Assembly (NCBI RefSeq): GCF_902713615.1
Contig: NC_052157.1
Location: 64,343,703 to 64,407,702, forward strand
Length of the DNA stretch: 64,000 bases
Reading direction: 5' to 3'
Source: Scyliorhinus canicula
Lineage: Eukaryota
Shown: one piece after another, positions 1,066 through 34,071 of the stretch
Position numbering within the stretch: position 1 is the first letter of the stretch
Layout: every line of letters begins with the position of its first letter
Made by a program: the position numbers and the translations under genes
The notes under the pieces: generated by a model
What the model was told of the DNA's origin: nothing
Database searches by the model: none
The model's input: only the letters and a program-made list of their open reading frames with translations

Positions 1066-1136
1066 TTCTTGAGAAAAGCACCCAGAGCTTTGACAAACTC
1101 CTGCTGATTCACATCCTTAACTGTTACACCAGGCAT
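1066..1136 (-). CDS. rps19: 40S ribosomal protein S19, first coding exon (exon 2); the gene continues left of the window
   Basis: Hand translation of the minus strand gives ATG CCT GGT GTA ... CTC AAG AA = [23 protein letters not shown](K), nearly identical to the vertebrate RPS19 N-terminus. Acceptor ttttttttacag|ATG, donor AA|gtatgt, 71 bp. Too short for the ORF track. Confidence 0.96.
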
Positions 1137-1792
1137 CTGTAAAAAAAAAGCATAAAATGAATGGACTGCAAGACAAAGGCAAAATCAATTTAAAGCACAC
1201 CCCCTGACATTCAACATTAGCGCTCGGTAGGAACAGATCCCTCTCCATCACATGCAAAACCATTACTGAGCAGAGGCACATTCTGTTCCTCAAGTCTCAG
1301 TTGTGGCTGCACAATTATCATCAAGTACAGAATCCACAGTCCCATTTACAAACTTTATGCCAATATCTGCAAGTTTATTCCCCTCAAGTGTCCACCCAAT
1401 TTCTGTCCGAAATCACTGTGGGCAGCAGTTCCAGATTGTCACCACTCACTAGCGGCACAAACAAAACTTCCCCCTCCTTTCTGGATTAACATTCCAGCCA
1501 TGGGTTGTTATGCCAATTCCGTAGACTTCGGAATAAACCAAATGAGGTTTAAAAAAATGAATGAGGGGAACAGGCCACATAACCACAATGGGATTCTTGG
1601 GATTGGATTATTACCTGAGATTATGAACACTGCATTCAACGAGAGCCGGAGCACTTTCTCACTGAGACACACTTGAAGGTCCCTTGTGCTATGTTCCTCA
1701 GCTAGAGGAATTTACTTGAACTCTTTCCCCACCAAATAACCAGGAGACGACAGAGTTTAAGTAATTGAACAAAGAACAGGAACAGGCCCTTA

Positions 1793-2127
1793 GGGGCAGC
1801 ATGGTAGTTAGCATCAATGCTTCACAGCTCCAGGGTCCCAGGTTCGGTTCCCGGCTGGGTCACTGTCTGTGCCGAGTCTGCACGTCCTCCCAATGTGTGC
1901 GTGGGTTTCCTCCGGGTGCTCCGGTTTCCTCCCACAGTCCAAAGATGTGCGGGTTAGGTGGATTGGCCATGCTAAATTGCCCGTAGTGTCCTAAAAAGTA
2001 AGGTTAAGGGGGAGTTGTTGGGTTACGGGTATAGGGTGGATACGTGAGTTTGAGTAGGGTGATCATTGCTCGGCACAACATCGAGGGCTGAAGGGCCTGT
2101 TCTGTGCTGTACTGTTCTATGTTCTAT
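1793..2127 (+). mobile_element. HE1-like tRNA-derived SINE
   Basis: ggggcagc head, B-box-like ggttcggttccc, tail gggcctgttctgtgctgtactgttctatgttctatg shared with the CR1 LINE 3' end. Near-identical copy at 39437-39776. Confidence 0.85.
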
Positions 2128-3364
2128 GATTGATGGAGATGGGGGGGGGGAACAAAAAAATGGAGGAGTAATTGTTTTCAACCAGCTTGTCACAGATCTG
2201 GAAGTCACTGCCAAAAACAGCTGTAGCTTCCTGATCACATTTAAAAATTGATTGCATAGGCACATGAATTAGCGACAGGACTAAAGCCAAGAATAAGAAT
2301 TTCAATGGGGAATTAGAGGGGTAACAAAAGCTGTTCTTGCCAGTGACTTGCCTATCACAATAAAAAGTGAAACCAAATTTGAGAGAAAGCCTACTTGAAC
2401 CAGAGGGTCCTCTATTGTCTTTCATGGTTTGCAAAATCCTTGTTGCCTCAACACACATTACCTTTTATATCCCGTCCCTTACAGGCCACTGCTCTCTTTG
2501 GGCCAGTTGTTACCAACCACAATCTATCCCACTCATTCCCGCTGGCCCACCTATCCAGGTCTGACTGCATCCTGCTTCCCCCACAAGAGGCCTGCAATTT
2601 CTGGACCTGCTGCAAGGCAGAGAGAGAAGGATATCCTCCAAAATCAGGATAAACCATAATCCTTGCACCCCCTCTCACTTGCCTCACCCCCTCCCTATAT
2701 TTTCATCCTCTCTCTGCCCCACATCTCCCCTCTCAATCACTCTCCTCCTCTATAGGCAACATCCTATTCTCACTCTCTTCTAACTAGTGGTAAATTCATT
2801 ACATACCACCACCACCCACCCAACAATCACTCTGTTGTGCCCAGTTTCCTCTCATCCTCGTTTAACCCCTCACTGTGGATATCTCTACACTGCTGTCTCC
2901 ACTTGTATTGCCTCTTAACACCAGACCCATGTCCATCATTCTGACTACCACTCTATCCCCCAGTGTACAGCTCCCTCCCATCATGCTGTCTCTTCCTCCT
3001 ATCCCCACCACCACCCATCCCATCTGCATATTTGTATCCCTCTCACCAAGTCATCTCGTTTGTTCTCTGTGATATCTCCCATTATCCCCTATCACACATG
3101 ATTATACCCCCCCAACCATACTGTATACAGTAAGAAGTCTTACAACACCAGGTTAAAGTCCAACAGGTTTGTTTCAAACACGAGCTTTCGGAGCACACAG
3201 TTCTCCGTTTTCTCTCCCCCCCCCCCCCCCCCCCCCATACTGTTCTCCATTTTCTCTCTATCTCCAACCACTTTGTTAATCTGTTGTGTATAACTCCATT
3301 CCCAATATGGTGCATCTCTCTCTCTCTTCTCCCCCCTTCTCCATCCCAGCATGTACACTTCTCC

Positions 3365-3960
3365 CCCCACTTCCTACGGAAGCTAAAGAAATTAGGCATG
3401 TTTGCTTCGACTCACAAACTTCCACAGATGTGCCATAGAAAGCATCCGATCTGGCTCCATCACAGCTTGGTACAGCAATTGCTCGGTCCAAGATCACAAG
3501 AAACTGCAGAGTGTGGTAAACTCAGCCAATGCATCACACAAGTTTGCCATCCTCCCATTGATTCTGTATACACCTCCCACTGCCTCAGAAAGGCAGACAG
3601 CATTGTCAGAGACCCCTCACACCCAGGCTTTGCCCTCTTCCAGACCCTTCCATATACAAGGCATCATGCAGAAGAAACAGAAGTCACACATCCAGACGAA
3701 GAAACAGAAGTCACACATCCAGACGTGGGAACAGCTTCTTCCCCAGTTACTAGACTCCTCAACGACTCCCCCCTTGGATTGATCTGTTCCTTGTAAAAAC
3801 ATTTGAATTCTTGCTCATGCATTTGCTTTGTTTGGCTTCTTGTTCCGCACTGTAACGAATCAATTTGTCAATGAATTCTGTTGATTATGCTTTTGTCTAC
3901 TATGTACATTCCCTTTGCCACAGAACTGTACTTCAGTACGTGACAATAAATATCAATCAT
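3365..3960 (+). mobile_element. Rex/Babar-like LINE 3' end
   Basis: FLRKLKK...LTNFHRCAIESI.SGSITAWYSNC; homologous to 10980-11270. Confidence 0.7.
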
Positions 3961-31740: not shown

Positions 31741-32559
31741 TTTGAGGGTGTGAATGATGCTATATAATTTCATATTTTTGTTTATTTGTTGAGCTGAGTG
31801 AAATAAATCTAAAACATGATAGGGTTATTTGTTGCTTTAAGGTTCACTCCCTTTCAAATATCGTTTCCTTTACAGAAGCAGAGGGCCATTCGGCCCATCA
31901 AGCCGTGCTGCCTCTTTGAAAGATCTATCCAATTAGTTCCCCCCCCCCCAGCTCTTTCCCCCCTATTCCTGCAATTTTTTCTCCTTCAAGTATTTATCCA
32001 ACTCCCCCTTTAGAAAGCTTGTATTGAATCTTCCACCGCCCTTTCAGGCAGCAACTTCCATCATAGAATTTACAGTGCAGTTGAAGGCCATTCAGCCCAT
32101 CAAGTCTACACCGGCCCTTGGAAAGAGCACCCTACTTAAGCCCACACCTCCACCCTATCCCTGTAACCCAGTAACCCCACCTAACGTTTGGAAACTAAGA
32201 GGCAATTTAGCATGGTCAATCCAGCTAACCTGCATATCTTTGGACTGTGGGAGGAAACCAGAGCATCTGGAGGATACCCACGCAGACATGGGGAGAAAGT
32301 GCAAATTCCACACAGACAGTCATCCGAGGCCGGAAGTGAACCTTGGTCCCTGGAGCTGTGAGGCAGCAGTGTTAACCATCGTGCCACCCAGATCACAACA
32401 ACTTGCTGTGTGAATAAAAATAAAAAATCTTCTCCTCTCGCTCCACTGGTTCTTTTCCTGATTCTCTTCAATCTGGTTATCGACACTCCTACCACTGGAA
32501 ACACTCTCTAATTTAGTTTCTGACAATGGAATGTCTTGATTCAATCAACCATTGATCTT

Positions 32560-33430
32560 TCCTGCTGACATTAATTGGTATTACCATCACTGAATCCCCC
32601 ACAATCAACATCCTGGGGTTAACATTGATCAGAAACTGAACTGGACCAGCCATATTAATACTGTGGCTACCAGGACAGGTCAATAGCCAGGAATCCTACG
32701 GCGAGTAACTCATCTCCTGACCCTCCAAAGCCAGTCCATCATCTACAAGGCACAAATCATGAGTGTAATGGAAGGGTAATTAAAAAGGGGGAAGCGATAA
32801 GGTGGGAGCGGGTTAGTGGGGAATTTTTGTTGGGGTGTTGGTTATGTAAAGCCAGGTTGGCTGGTTTGGGGGGGGGTGTTGTCCATTGTGTTAAAATTTA
32901 GAATATAAATGCCTCAATAAAATATTTTTCAAGAAAAAAAGGAGTGTAATGGAATACTCACCACCTGCCTGGATGATGCAGCTCCAACAACACTCAATGA
33001 GCTTGACACCATCCAGGACAAAGCAGCCCGCTTGATTTCTCCCCCTTCTACAAATGTTCAGACCCTCCACCACCGACGAACAGTGGTAGCCGTGTGTACC
33101 ATCCACAAGATGCACTGCAGTAACTCGCTAAGGTTCCTTAGACAGCACCTTCCAAACTCAAAACTGCTGCCATCTAGAAGGACAAGAGCAGCAGATACCT
33201 GGGAATCCCACCACCAGAAGGTTCCCCTCCAAGTCACTCACCACCCTGACTTGGAATTATAGCGCCGTTTCTTCACTGTCGCTGGGAAAAAATCCTGGAA
33301 CTCTCTCCCTAACAGCACAGTGGGTGTATCTACACCTCAGGGATTGCAATGGTTTAAGAAGGCAACTCACCATCACCTTCTGAAGGCCAATTGGGATGGG
33401 AAATAAATGCTGGCCTAACCAGCAATGCCT
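32560..33430 (+). mobile_element. LINE ORF2 C-terminal/3' fragment (CR1/L2 group); related copy at 61440-61980
   Basis: SVMEYSPPAWM...LDTIQDKAARLI...LHHRRTV; interrupted by a short insertion. Confidence 0.65.
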
Positions 33431-33832
33431 TCATTTAAACTTTAAAAAAATTATTGAATGCTTTTAATGTTCATACAGGCCTCTATGTGGAACCTTCTCC
33501 CTCTTAAAAAGCTGTTGAGGCAAGGGGGGGGGGGTGCGTCAGTTGGAAATTTAGATGTTATTTTTTGTTTTATTTGGTTACCGAGAATTAAGATACGGCT
33601 TAGCCATTATCTATTTGAAAGGCGAGAGAGTTTTGAGCGGCTGAATGGTCTCCTCCTGTTCCTATGCTTTTTAGATCCATTTTGCTCTGGTTTCTGGTTC
33701 CATAGTTAATGGTGTTGGTAAGCGATATGTTCAGGCGTTTTCGTAGTGTGTTACTAAGAACGAGTGCGTTGCGTTGTGCAGTCCTGTCCTATAACACTGT
33801 TCTGTTGTTTTACAGGTCTGGCCAGAAGGGAA

Positions 33833-34071
33833 ATGGAAGCCAACAATCTAACCAACGCCCCTTACCCAGAATCCACTGGAAGTGGCGACGAATTGAGGAT
33901 TGTTGGTAACTTTGCCTCTCCGCTCCCTTCAGGTATGGCCTACCGGATGGTGACCACACGCTCCCCGACTTGCGCTCGCTGTCGTAACCATGGCATCACA
34001 GTGCCACTGAAAGGACACAAGAAAACCTGCCAGTGGCAGACATGTCAGTGTGACAAATGCATCCTAATCCT
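33833..34071 (+). CDS. dmrtc2: DM-domain transcription factor (DMRTC2/Dmrt7-like), first coding exon (exon starts at 33816)
   Basis: Acceptor ttgttttacag|. Encodes MEANNLT...[37 protein letters not shown](L); phase-2 donor CT|gtgagt. DM identity is certain; the subfamily call comes from signature residues and synteny. Confidence 0.88.

Follow-up and report, generated by a model that had tools for sequence, protein, structure and literature searches.

The window analysed in this study, a stretch of 64,000 nucleotides from C12 of the catshark Scyliorhinus canicula (C12:64,343,703-64,407,702, in a genome of 4.22 Gb), carries the ribosomal-protein gene rps19, a gene for a G-protein-coupled receptor (GPCR) and the 5' part of a DM-domain gene that is assigned here to DMRT7/DMRTC2 and called dmrt7. 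The three genes are arranged as rps19(<-) GPCR(<-) dmrt7(->), and it is probable, at roughly 0.85, that this interval is a piece of an old jawed-vertebrate neighbourhood and no functional device, with the DM gene being DMRT7/DMRTC2 and the layout common to shark and lizard being probably the ancestral one. The identities of the genes, their coordinates and the orthology are demonstrated, and orientations were determined in six species. From the start of rps19 (4409) to the DM exon (33815) the distance is 29.4 kb and transcription is divergent, in agreement with the earlier note on this DNA, which had described a divergent pair about 29 kb apart. By our own arithmetic, a functional rps19 present once in a genome of 4.2 Gb would fall by chance within 30 kb of one of its ten DM loci with a probability of about 1e-4.

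The assignment of the DM gene draws on several kinds of evidence. A tree built from 38 DM regions places the window gene and its shark and ray relatives in one clade with DMRTC2 of newt, lizard, gecko, turtle, alligator and mammals (support 100/99), a clade that is present in 100% of the bootstrap trees, and the nine other catshark DM loci group with DMRT1, 2a, 2b, 3, a second DMRT3-like gene, A1, A2, 6 and a 93B-like gene. Residues diagnostic of DMRTC2 are found in the DM domain, namely PTC in place of PKC and RRR in place of RQR. The C-terminal profile common to DMRTC1 and DMRTC2 (PF15791) matches the annotated catshark protein P0307, which is 100% identical to the dmrt exons of the window, at 35.5 bits against a cut-off of 27; the part of the gene that gives this match lies outside the window. 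Pristiophorus scores 31.1 with the same profile, and Stegostoma scores 25, slightly below the cut-off. Furthermore, the DM domain is split by an intron after ...CILIL, the codon being shared by catshark, zebra shark, sawfish, Podarcis and Heteronotia, and among the ten DM loci of the catshark genome the window gene is the only one with a split DM domain. An EAAEAL motif and a C-terminal IGxLGSxSL motif are common to DMRTC2 from shark to platypus. Because the DM tree, the PF15791 score, the shared intron position and the shared motifs agree, the gene is, as judged from its sequence, the catshark orthologue of DMRT7/DMRTC2. Linkage to RPS19, which the window has in common with zebra shark, sawfish, bamboo shark, lizard and mammals, had been put forward in the earlier note as independent support for Dmrt7 orthology, and it does agree with the tree, the PF15791 match, the intron position and the C-terminal motifs.

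The first coding exon of dmrt7 ends at 34071 with a GT donor at 34072, and the exon at 43611 is preceded by an AG acceptor in a phase that completes the split leucine codon. In transcript contigs from runs X1-X3 (two studies), the match starts at 33815 and stops at 34071 while the contigs continue for up to 1.6 kb, and transcript depth over the intron flanking the DM exon is zero. These contig boundaries indicate that the exon is transcribed and spliced at the predicted donor, and that at least one non-coding exon lies upstream. No reads over the DM exon were found in the oligo-dT RNA run X10.

The window rps19 is a working gene and the sole intron-bearing rps19 of the genome, as follows from its introns and its identity to the annotated RPS19, set against the intronless state of the other copies. 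Its leader exon starts with CCTCTTCCTCCC and ends, by reading of the sequence, at a GTGAGA donor; a start of this pyrimidine-run type is typical of ribosomal-protein genes. The exon with the ATG has an AG acceptor immediately before 1136 and a GTATGT donor after 1066, and the positions given for the two exons in the earlier note (1136-1066 and 4409-4367) were exact. Each of the three coding exons checked is identical to the annotated Scyliorhinus RPS19 (P0296). An S19e coding sequence spread across introns, together with a leader exon of the terminal oligopyrimidine (TOP) type, which was taken as the mark of a functional cytoplasmic RPS19, is therefore present. Run against the complete genome, the S19e profile gave five matches, two of which are further exons of the window gene. 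The remaining three, on C21, C15 and C8, are contiguous across 124-135 profile positions, with stops in two of them, and since they are uninterrupted they are read as intronless processed retrocopies. The retrocopy at C21:66112843-66113223 is free of stops over S19e positions 9-135 and lies within an open frame of 148 amino acids. The leader segment of rps19 is kept upstream of the ATG exon in other elasmobranchs, at a distance of about 3.1-3.6 kb in zebra shark, whale shark and sevengill shark and of about 1.2 kb in the sawfish.

The third member of the group, which the earlier note had placed between rps19 and the DM gene, is a genuine gene of two exons on the minus strand (20043-15374). It encodes P0417 (347 amino acids, 100% identical, with a 7tm_1 domain), annotated as "adenosine receptor A2a-like". 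Catshark, sevengill shark, horn shark and Podarcis all have a gene of this kind, with NTH or NAH at the DRY position, immediately upstream of rps19 and in the same orientation. The Podarcis orthologue is unannotated, being absent from the genes called at that locus in the collection searched, and its two exons show 87% and 72% identity to the gecko protein and 68% and 45% to the catshark protein; for the gecko orthologue, P0425, the identity is 46%. Shark and lizard receptors are thus 45-68% identical, against 33% to the nearest adenosine receptor, and on these sequence comparisons they are taken to be orthologous.

The neighbourhood recurs, in whole or in part, in other species. In the lizard Podarcis lilfordi (OX395133.1), DMRTC2 (-) lies at 11,121,197-11,131,796, the GPCR (+) at 11,271,068-11,272,852 and RPS19 (+) at 11.278 Mb, about 7 kb further, so that order and orientation are exactly those of the catshark, with 139 kb from DMRTC2 to the GPCR. 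The full trio dmrt7-GPCR-rps19 has been seen directly in catshark and Podarcis only. In the zebra shark (CM060549.1), rps19 (-) at 4,081,364-4,089,908 and a dmrtc2-like gene (+) at 4,135,326-4,158,168 stand head-to-head, 45 kb apart. In the smalltooth sawfish, dmrt7 exon 1 (-) and the rps19 ATG exon are on opposite strands, the former about 7.15 kb upstream of the latter, with the rps19 leader exon between them, and there is no trace of the GPCR between dmrt7 and rps19. Sevengill and horn sharks have the GPCR 6-7 kb upstream of rps19 and, as in the window, in the orientation of that gene. Flanks of 10 kb were compared, which span neither the distance from GPCR to dmrt7 in the sevengill shark nor that from rps19 to GPCR in zebra and whale sharks. 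In the brownbanded bamboo shark, models of RPS19 and dmrt7 share one scaffold of 211 kb.

The mammalian locus is similar in content and different in form. In a paper on the RPS19 locus, DMRTC2 is shown with its 3' end immediately upstream of RPS19 (PMC2703794), and fused gene models in squirrel and tree shrew run from DM through a DMRT-like region to S19e; both bear out the tandem adjacency of human DMRTC2 and RPS19 that the earlier note had given. In mammals (DMRTC2-RPS19, 19q13.2) as in the catshark, the two orthologues stand next to each other, RPS19 begins with a non-coding TOP exon 1 and has the ATG at the start of exon 2, and DMRTC2 has the DM signature, EAAEAL and the C-terminal IGxLGSxSL. 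However, the mammalian genes stand in tandem with nothing between them, whereas the catshark genes are head-to-head across 29 kb with the GPCR between, and the shark protein differs in having a DMA motif. With Podarcis lilfordi the catshark shares the order and orientation of the three genes, the intron codon in the DM domain and the position of the GPCR, which in the lizard has the orientation of RPS19 and precedes the ATG exon of that gene by about 7 kb. The lizard differs in the 139 kb between DMRTC2 and the GPCR, in a GBP gene just upstream of DMRTC2 (in P. raffonei), in a DMRTC2 protein without the DMA motif and in having PAFAH1B3 directly downstream of DMRTC2, whereas the PAFAH1B3-like gene of the catshark is 33 Mb away.

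Since the divergent layout, dmrt7(<-) GPCR(->) rps19(->), is common to chondrichthyans and a sauropsid, parsimony makes it likely that this layout is ancestral for jawed vertebrates and that the mammalian state is derived. On the line to mammals, DMRTC2 would have been inverted, so that its 3' end now faces the RPS19 promoter, and the GPCR would have been lost. In the sawfish only the GPCR would have been lost, independently of mammals, and the linkage of dmrt7 to rps19 would have been kept by descent; both this persistence and the direction of change are what we infer from the layouts compared. The earlier note had called for a local inversion together with gain or loss of the GPCR in one lineage. 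An inversion and a change in the GPCR are indeed needed, and the outgroup comparison with Podarcis points to mammals as the derived side, with DMRTC2 inverted and the GPCR lost. This can be refined in one respect: the sawfish is also without the GPCR, and the receptor would therefore have been lost at least twice.

Several points weigh against this interpretation. The polarity depends on one sauropsid genus for the full arrangement, and the lizard block is not compact, with 139 kb between genes and GBP just upstream of DMRTC2 in P. raffonei. Zebra, sevengill and horn sharks each show only part of the trio, and in the stingray Hypanus the two gene models lie on scaffolds that differ in length. 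CCDC97, a marker of human 19q13.2, is found on C27 and not on C12. The comparison of intron positions covers sharks, sawfish, lizard and gecko, and that of layouts covers sharks, the sawfish, one lizard genus and mammals. The dependence on one fully resolved sauropsid genus and the break in the lizard block, which indicates that the region does rearrange, would also suit a history in which the mammalian tandem layout is ancestral and elasmobranchs and squamates acquired the divergent, GPCR-containing layout independently of each other or from a misplaced common ancestor. That history is considered unlikely: the same inversion and the same position of the GPCR, 6-11 kb upstream of rps19 on the same strand, would have to arise twice, and the receptors concerned are orthologues by the identities given above. 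A divergent ancestral layout is accordingly preferred.

Two further explanations concern the linkage and the gene itself. The proximity could be an accident or an artefact, with a retrocopy or paralogue of rps19 lying near a DM gene or with pieces misjoined in assembly; the genome does hold three other rps19-like loci, and the interval is rich in transposons and minisatellites. This has practically no chance of being right, as the window rps19 has introns at the positions expected of RPS19, a TOP leader and an exact match to the annotated protein, whereas the other three copies are intronless, the window contains no N, and the neighbourhood recurs in independent assemblies of other sharks, the sawfish and the lizard, by which the explanation is already refuted. 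The same observations settle three doubts raised in the earlier note: the rps19 exons do not come from a paralogue, being those of the only intron-bearing copy and identical to P0296; the DNA from one gene to the other contains no assembly join; and other chondrichthyan assemblies, such as those of zebra shark and sawfish, show the linkage as well.

Alternatively, the DM gene could be of the DMA class ("DMRTA2-like") or a shark-specific duplicate of DMRT3, its nearness to rps19 being unrelated to the mammalian locus. Its DMA motif is clear (47.5 bits) and split by an intron (62363-62575 and, in window numbering, 69619-69828), shark and ray proteins score 38-47.5 bits for this motif, and no DMA motif was found in the tetrapod DMRTC2 proteins scanned; in a turtle and a lizard, the corresponding part of DMRTC2 bears a weak resemblance to it (LCQVLPQE...GCDG; E = 0.016, with a small database). 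In addition, the DMRTC2 clade stands beside DMRT3 in the DM tree (96/90), and the PF15791 scores of sharks are modest, at 25-35 bits. In phmmer searches the DMA motif scored 17-26 bits against every DMA family, with no clear affinity to one of them. However, the shark gene joins tetrapod DMRTC2 at 100/99, and it has in common with lizard DMRTC2 the intron in the DM domain, the motif EAAEAL, the C-terminal motifs and the linkage to RPS19 and the GPCR. The genes of the DMRT3/DMRTA group share with it the architecture of DM plus DMA, but differ in an unsplit DM domain, in lacking PF15791 and, for their catshark copies, in lying in other clusters on C4 and C8. This alternative is held to be very improbable. 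The identity implied by the RefSeq name of P0307 in Scyliorhinus canicula, "DMRT A2-like", was rejected, as the window gene belongs to the DMRTC2 clade and has a split DM domain, and the true A2-type DM domain is found at L007 (C4:55.2 Mb), with a DM region identical to that of teleost A2. The assignment to DMRT7/DMRTC2 is retained, and the features of the neighbourhood are listed in Table 1.

Table 1. Features of the rps19-GPCR-dmrt7 neighbourhood in Scyliorhinus canicula (positions in the window unless C12 is given)
Feature	Position	Strand	Remarks
rps19 exon 1, non-coding leader	4367..4409	-	pyrimidine run CCTCTTCCTCCC at 5' end, TOP-type; conserved in four other elasmobranch loci
rps19 exon 2, ATG as first codon	1066..1136	-	eS19 residues 1-24; identical to Scyliorhinus RPS19 protein P0296
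rps19 exon 3	C12:64343348-449	-	just beyond window start
rps19 exon 4	C12:64336952-7143	-	beyond window start
Retroelement remnant (RNase H, integrase)	5661..8359	+	between rps19 and GPCR
Two arrays of a 33-bp minisatellite, mutually inverted	12808-14029 and 16127-17643	.	bracket GPCR exon 2
Adenosine-receptor-like GPCR exon 2	15374..16090	-	transmembrane segments (TM) 4-7, tail, stop codon; exon start approximate, within a few bases
Adenosine-receptor-like GPCR exon 1	19717..20043	-	ATG to end of TM3; DRY position reads NTH
Long interspersed element (LINE) reverse-transcriptase remnant	23122..25246	+	between GPCR and dmrt7
dmrt7 first coding exon	33815..34071	+	ATG 33833 or 33935; DM domain positions 1-39 (Pfam DM)
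dmrt7 exon with remaining DM domain	43611..43752	+	ERRRVMAAQ...
dmrt7 exon in annotated isoform P0307	55157..55261	+	100% identity, P0307 residues 94-128
dmrt7 exon with first half of DMA motif	62363..62575	+	gene runs beyond window end
dmrt7 next exons	window-equivalent 69619-69828 and 72570-72803		outside window

Outside the genes, the interval consists of the retroelement remnants and 33-bp minisatellites. The second minisatellite array sits in the GPCR intron; the two arrays hold 37 and 46 copies of one 33-bp unit, which yields spurious long open reading frames on both strands. The GPCR was located at 15374-20043 in the window, at 13487-16243 in locus L041 and at 2825-4609 in locus L043. 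Models of dmrt7 in the bamboo sharks Chiloscyllium plagiosum (P0308) and C. punctatum (P0311) are fused to an upstream RING/B-box (TRIM-like) gene, which points either to one more neighbour on the same strand in that lineage or to wrongly predicted models. Elsewhere in the catshark genome, and judged by DM-region similarity only, a trio of dmrt1-, dmrt3- and dmrt2-type genes lies at C8:64.97-65.32 Mb, a parallel trio of dmrt6-type, second dmrt3-like and dmrt2b-type genes at C4:86.85-87.00 Mb, and a dmrt4-type gene and the 93B-like gene, 30 kb apart, at C8:56.86-56.89 Mb.

On a wider scale, the sole matches in the genome to HSL_N (LIPE) and to an RGS-like domain of ARHGEF1 type are found on C12, at 72.5 and 74.2 Mb, and so are the best match to PRA1 (RABAC1 type), at 95.9 Mb, and the PAFAH1B3-like gene, at 97.7 Mb; a protein query gave PAFAH1B-like exons on C19 as well as at C12:97.7 Mb. 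In human, LIPE, ARHGEF1, RABAC1, PAFAH1B3 and CCDC97 lie at 19q13.2, near RPS19, and on this basis C12 carries the shark counterpart of the human 19q13.2 region, dispersed across tens of megabases. The gene cd79a was not identified in the flank downstream of catshark rps19, a flank that was read in part, and tblastx comparison of the rps19-downstream flanks between species gave mostly repeat (reverse-transcriptase) matches. Sawfish rps19 is followed, 7.4 kb downstream, by an Ig-domain gene of the same orientation that may be cd79a. The GDSL-lipase profile PF13472 returned more than 25,000 first-look candidates across the genome, with near-identical scores and on all chromosomes, which looks like a very abundant repeated element with an esterase-like open reading frame. 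Stretches of C12 read as N from about 64,536,500, through all of 64,547,703-64,557,702 and 64,567,703-64,577,702, to about 64,593,260.

DMRT7 has been stated to be specific to mammals (PMC7689362) or to mammals and reptiles (PMC6737965), and a preprint of 2026 reports reptile DMRT7 orthologues "for the first time", with RPS19 noted as a conserved flank. Papers also link the origin of DMRT7 to the meiotic silencing of mammalian sex chromosomes. A literature search pairing dmrt7 or dmrtc2 with sharks found nothing relevant; in RefSeq, however, the genes of zebra shark, sawshark and stingray are already called "DMRTC2-like". Both the gene and its neighbourhood were known before, and the present result adds a new, deep lineage to them; it is not a new kind of thing.

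On the phylogeny, the domain content, the intron position and the linkage to RPS19, an orthologue in sharks and rays moves the origin of DMRT7 back to the jawed-vertebrate ancestor, and this earlier origin weakens the idea that the gene evolved together with mammalian sex chromosomes. It also implies that birds have no DMRT7, in line with published reports, and that ray-finned fishes and frogs may have none either; our search for a DMRT7 orthologue in these last two groups found none. More tentatively, DMRT7 could belong, as an ancient gene of jawed vertebrates, to the DMRT3 lineage with its DMA motif, and could be a sister of DMRT3 from whole-genome duplication, of which sharks would keep the original DM, DMA and C-terminal domains and tetrapods a decayed trace of DMA, such as the turtle look-alike; the trio would then have remained linked for more than 400 million years, and the reason may lie in regulatory sequence that the genes share and not in chance. 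The catshark annotation name "DMRTA2-like" is corrected by these results. In practice, looking next to rps19 provides an anchor with which DMRT7 can be found, or excluded, in any vertebrate genome, and the conserved GPCR beside rps19, an orphan receptor found here in sharks and squamates and not in mammals, can be traced via the same anchor.

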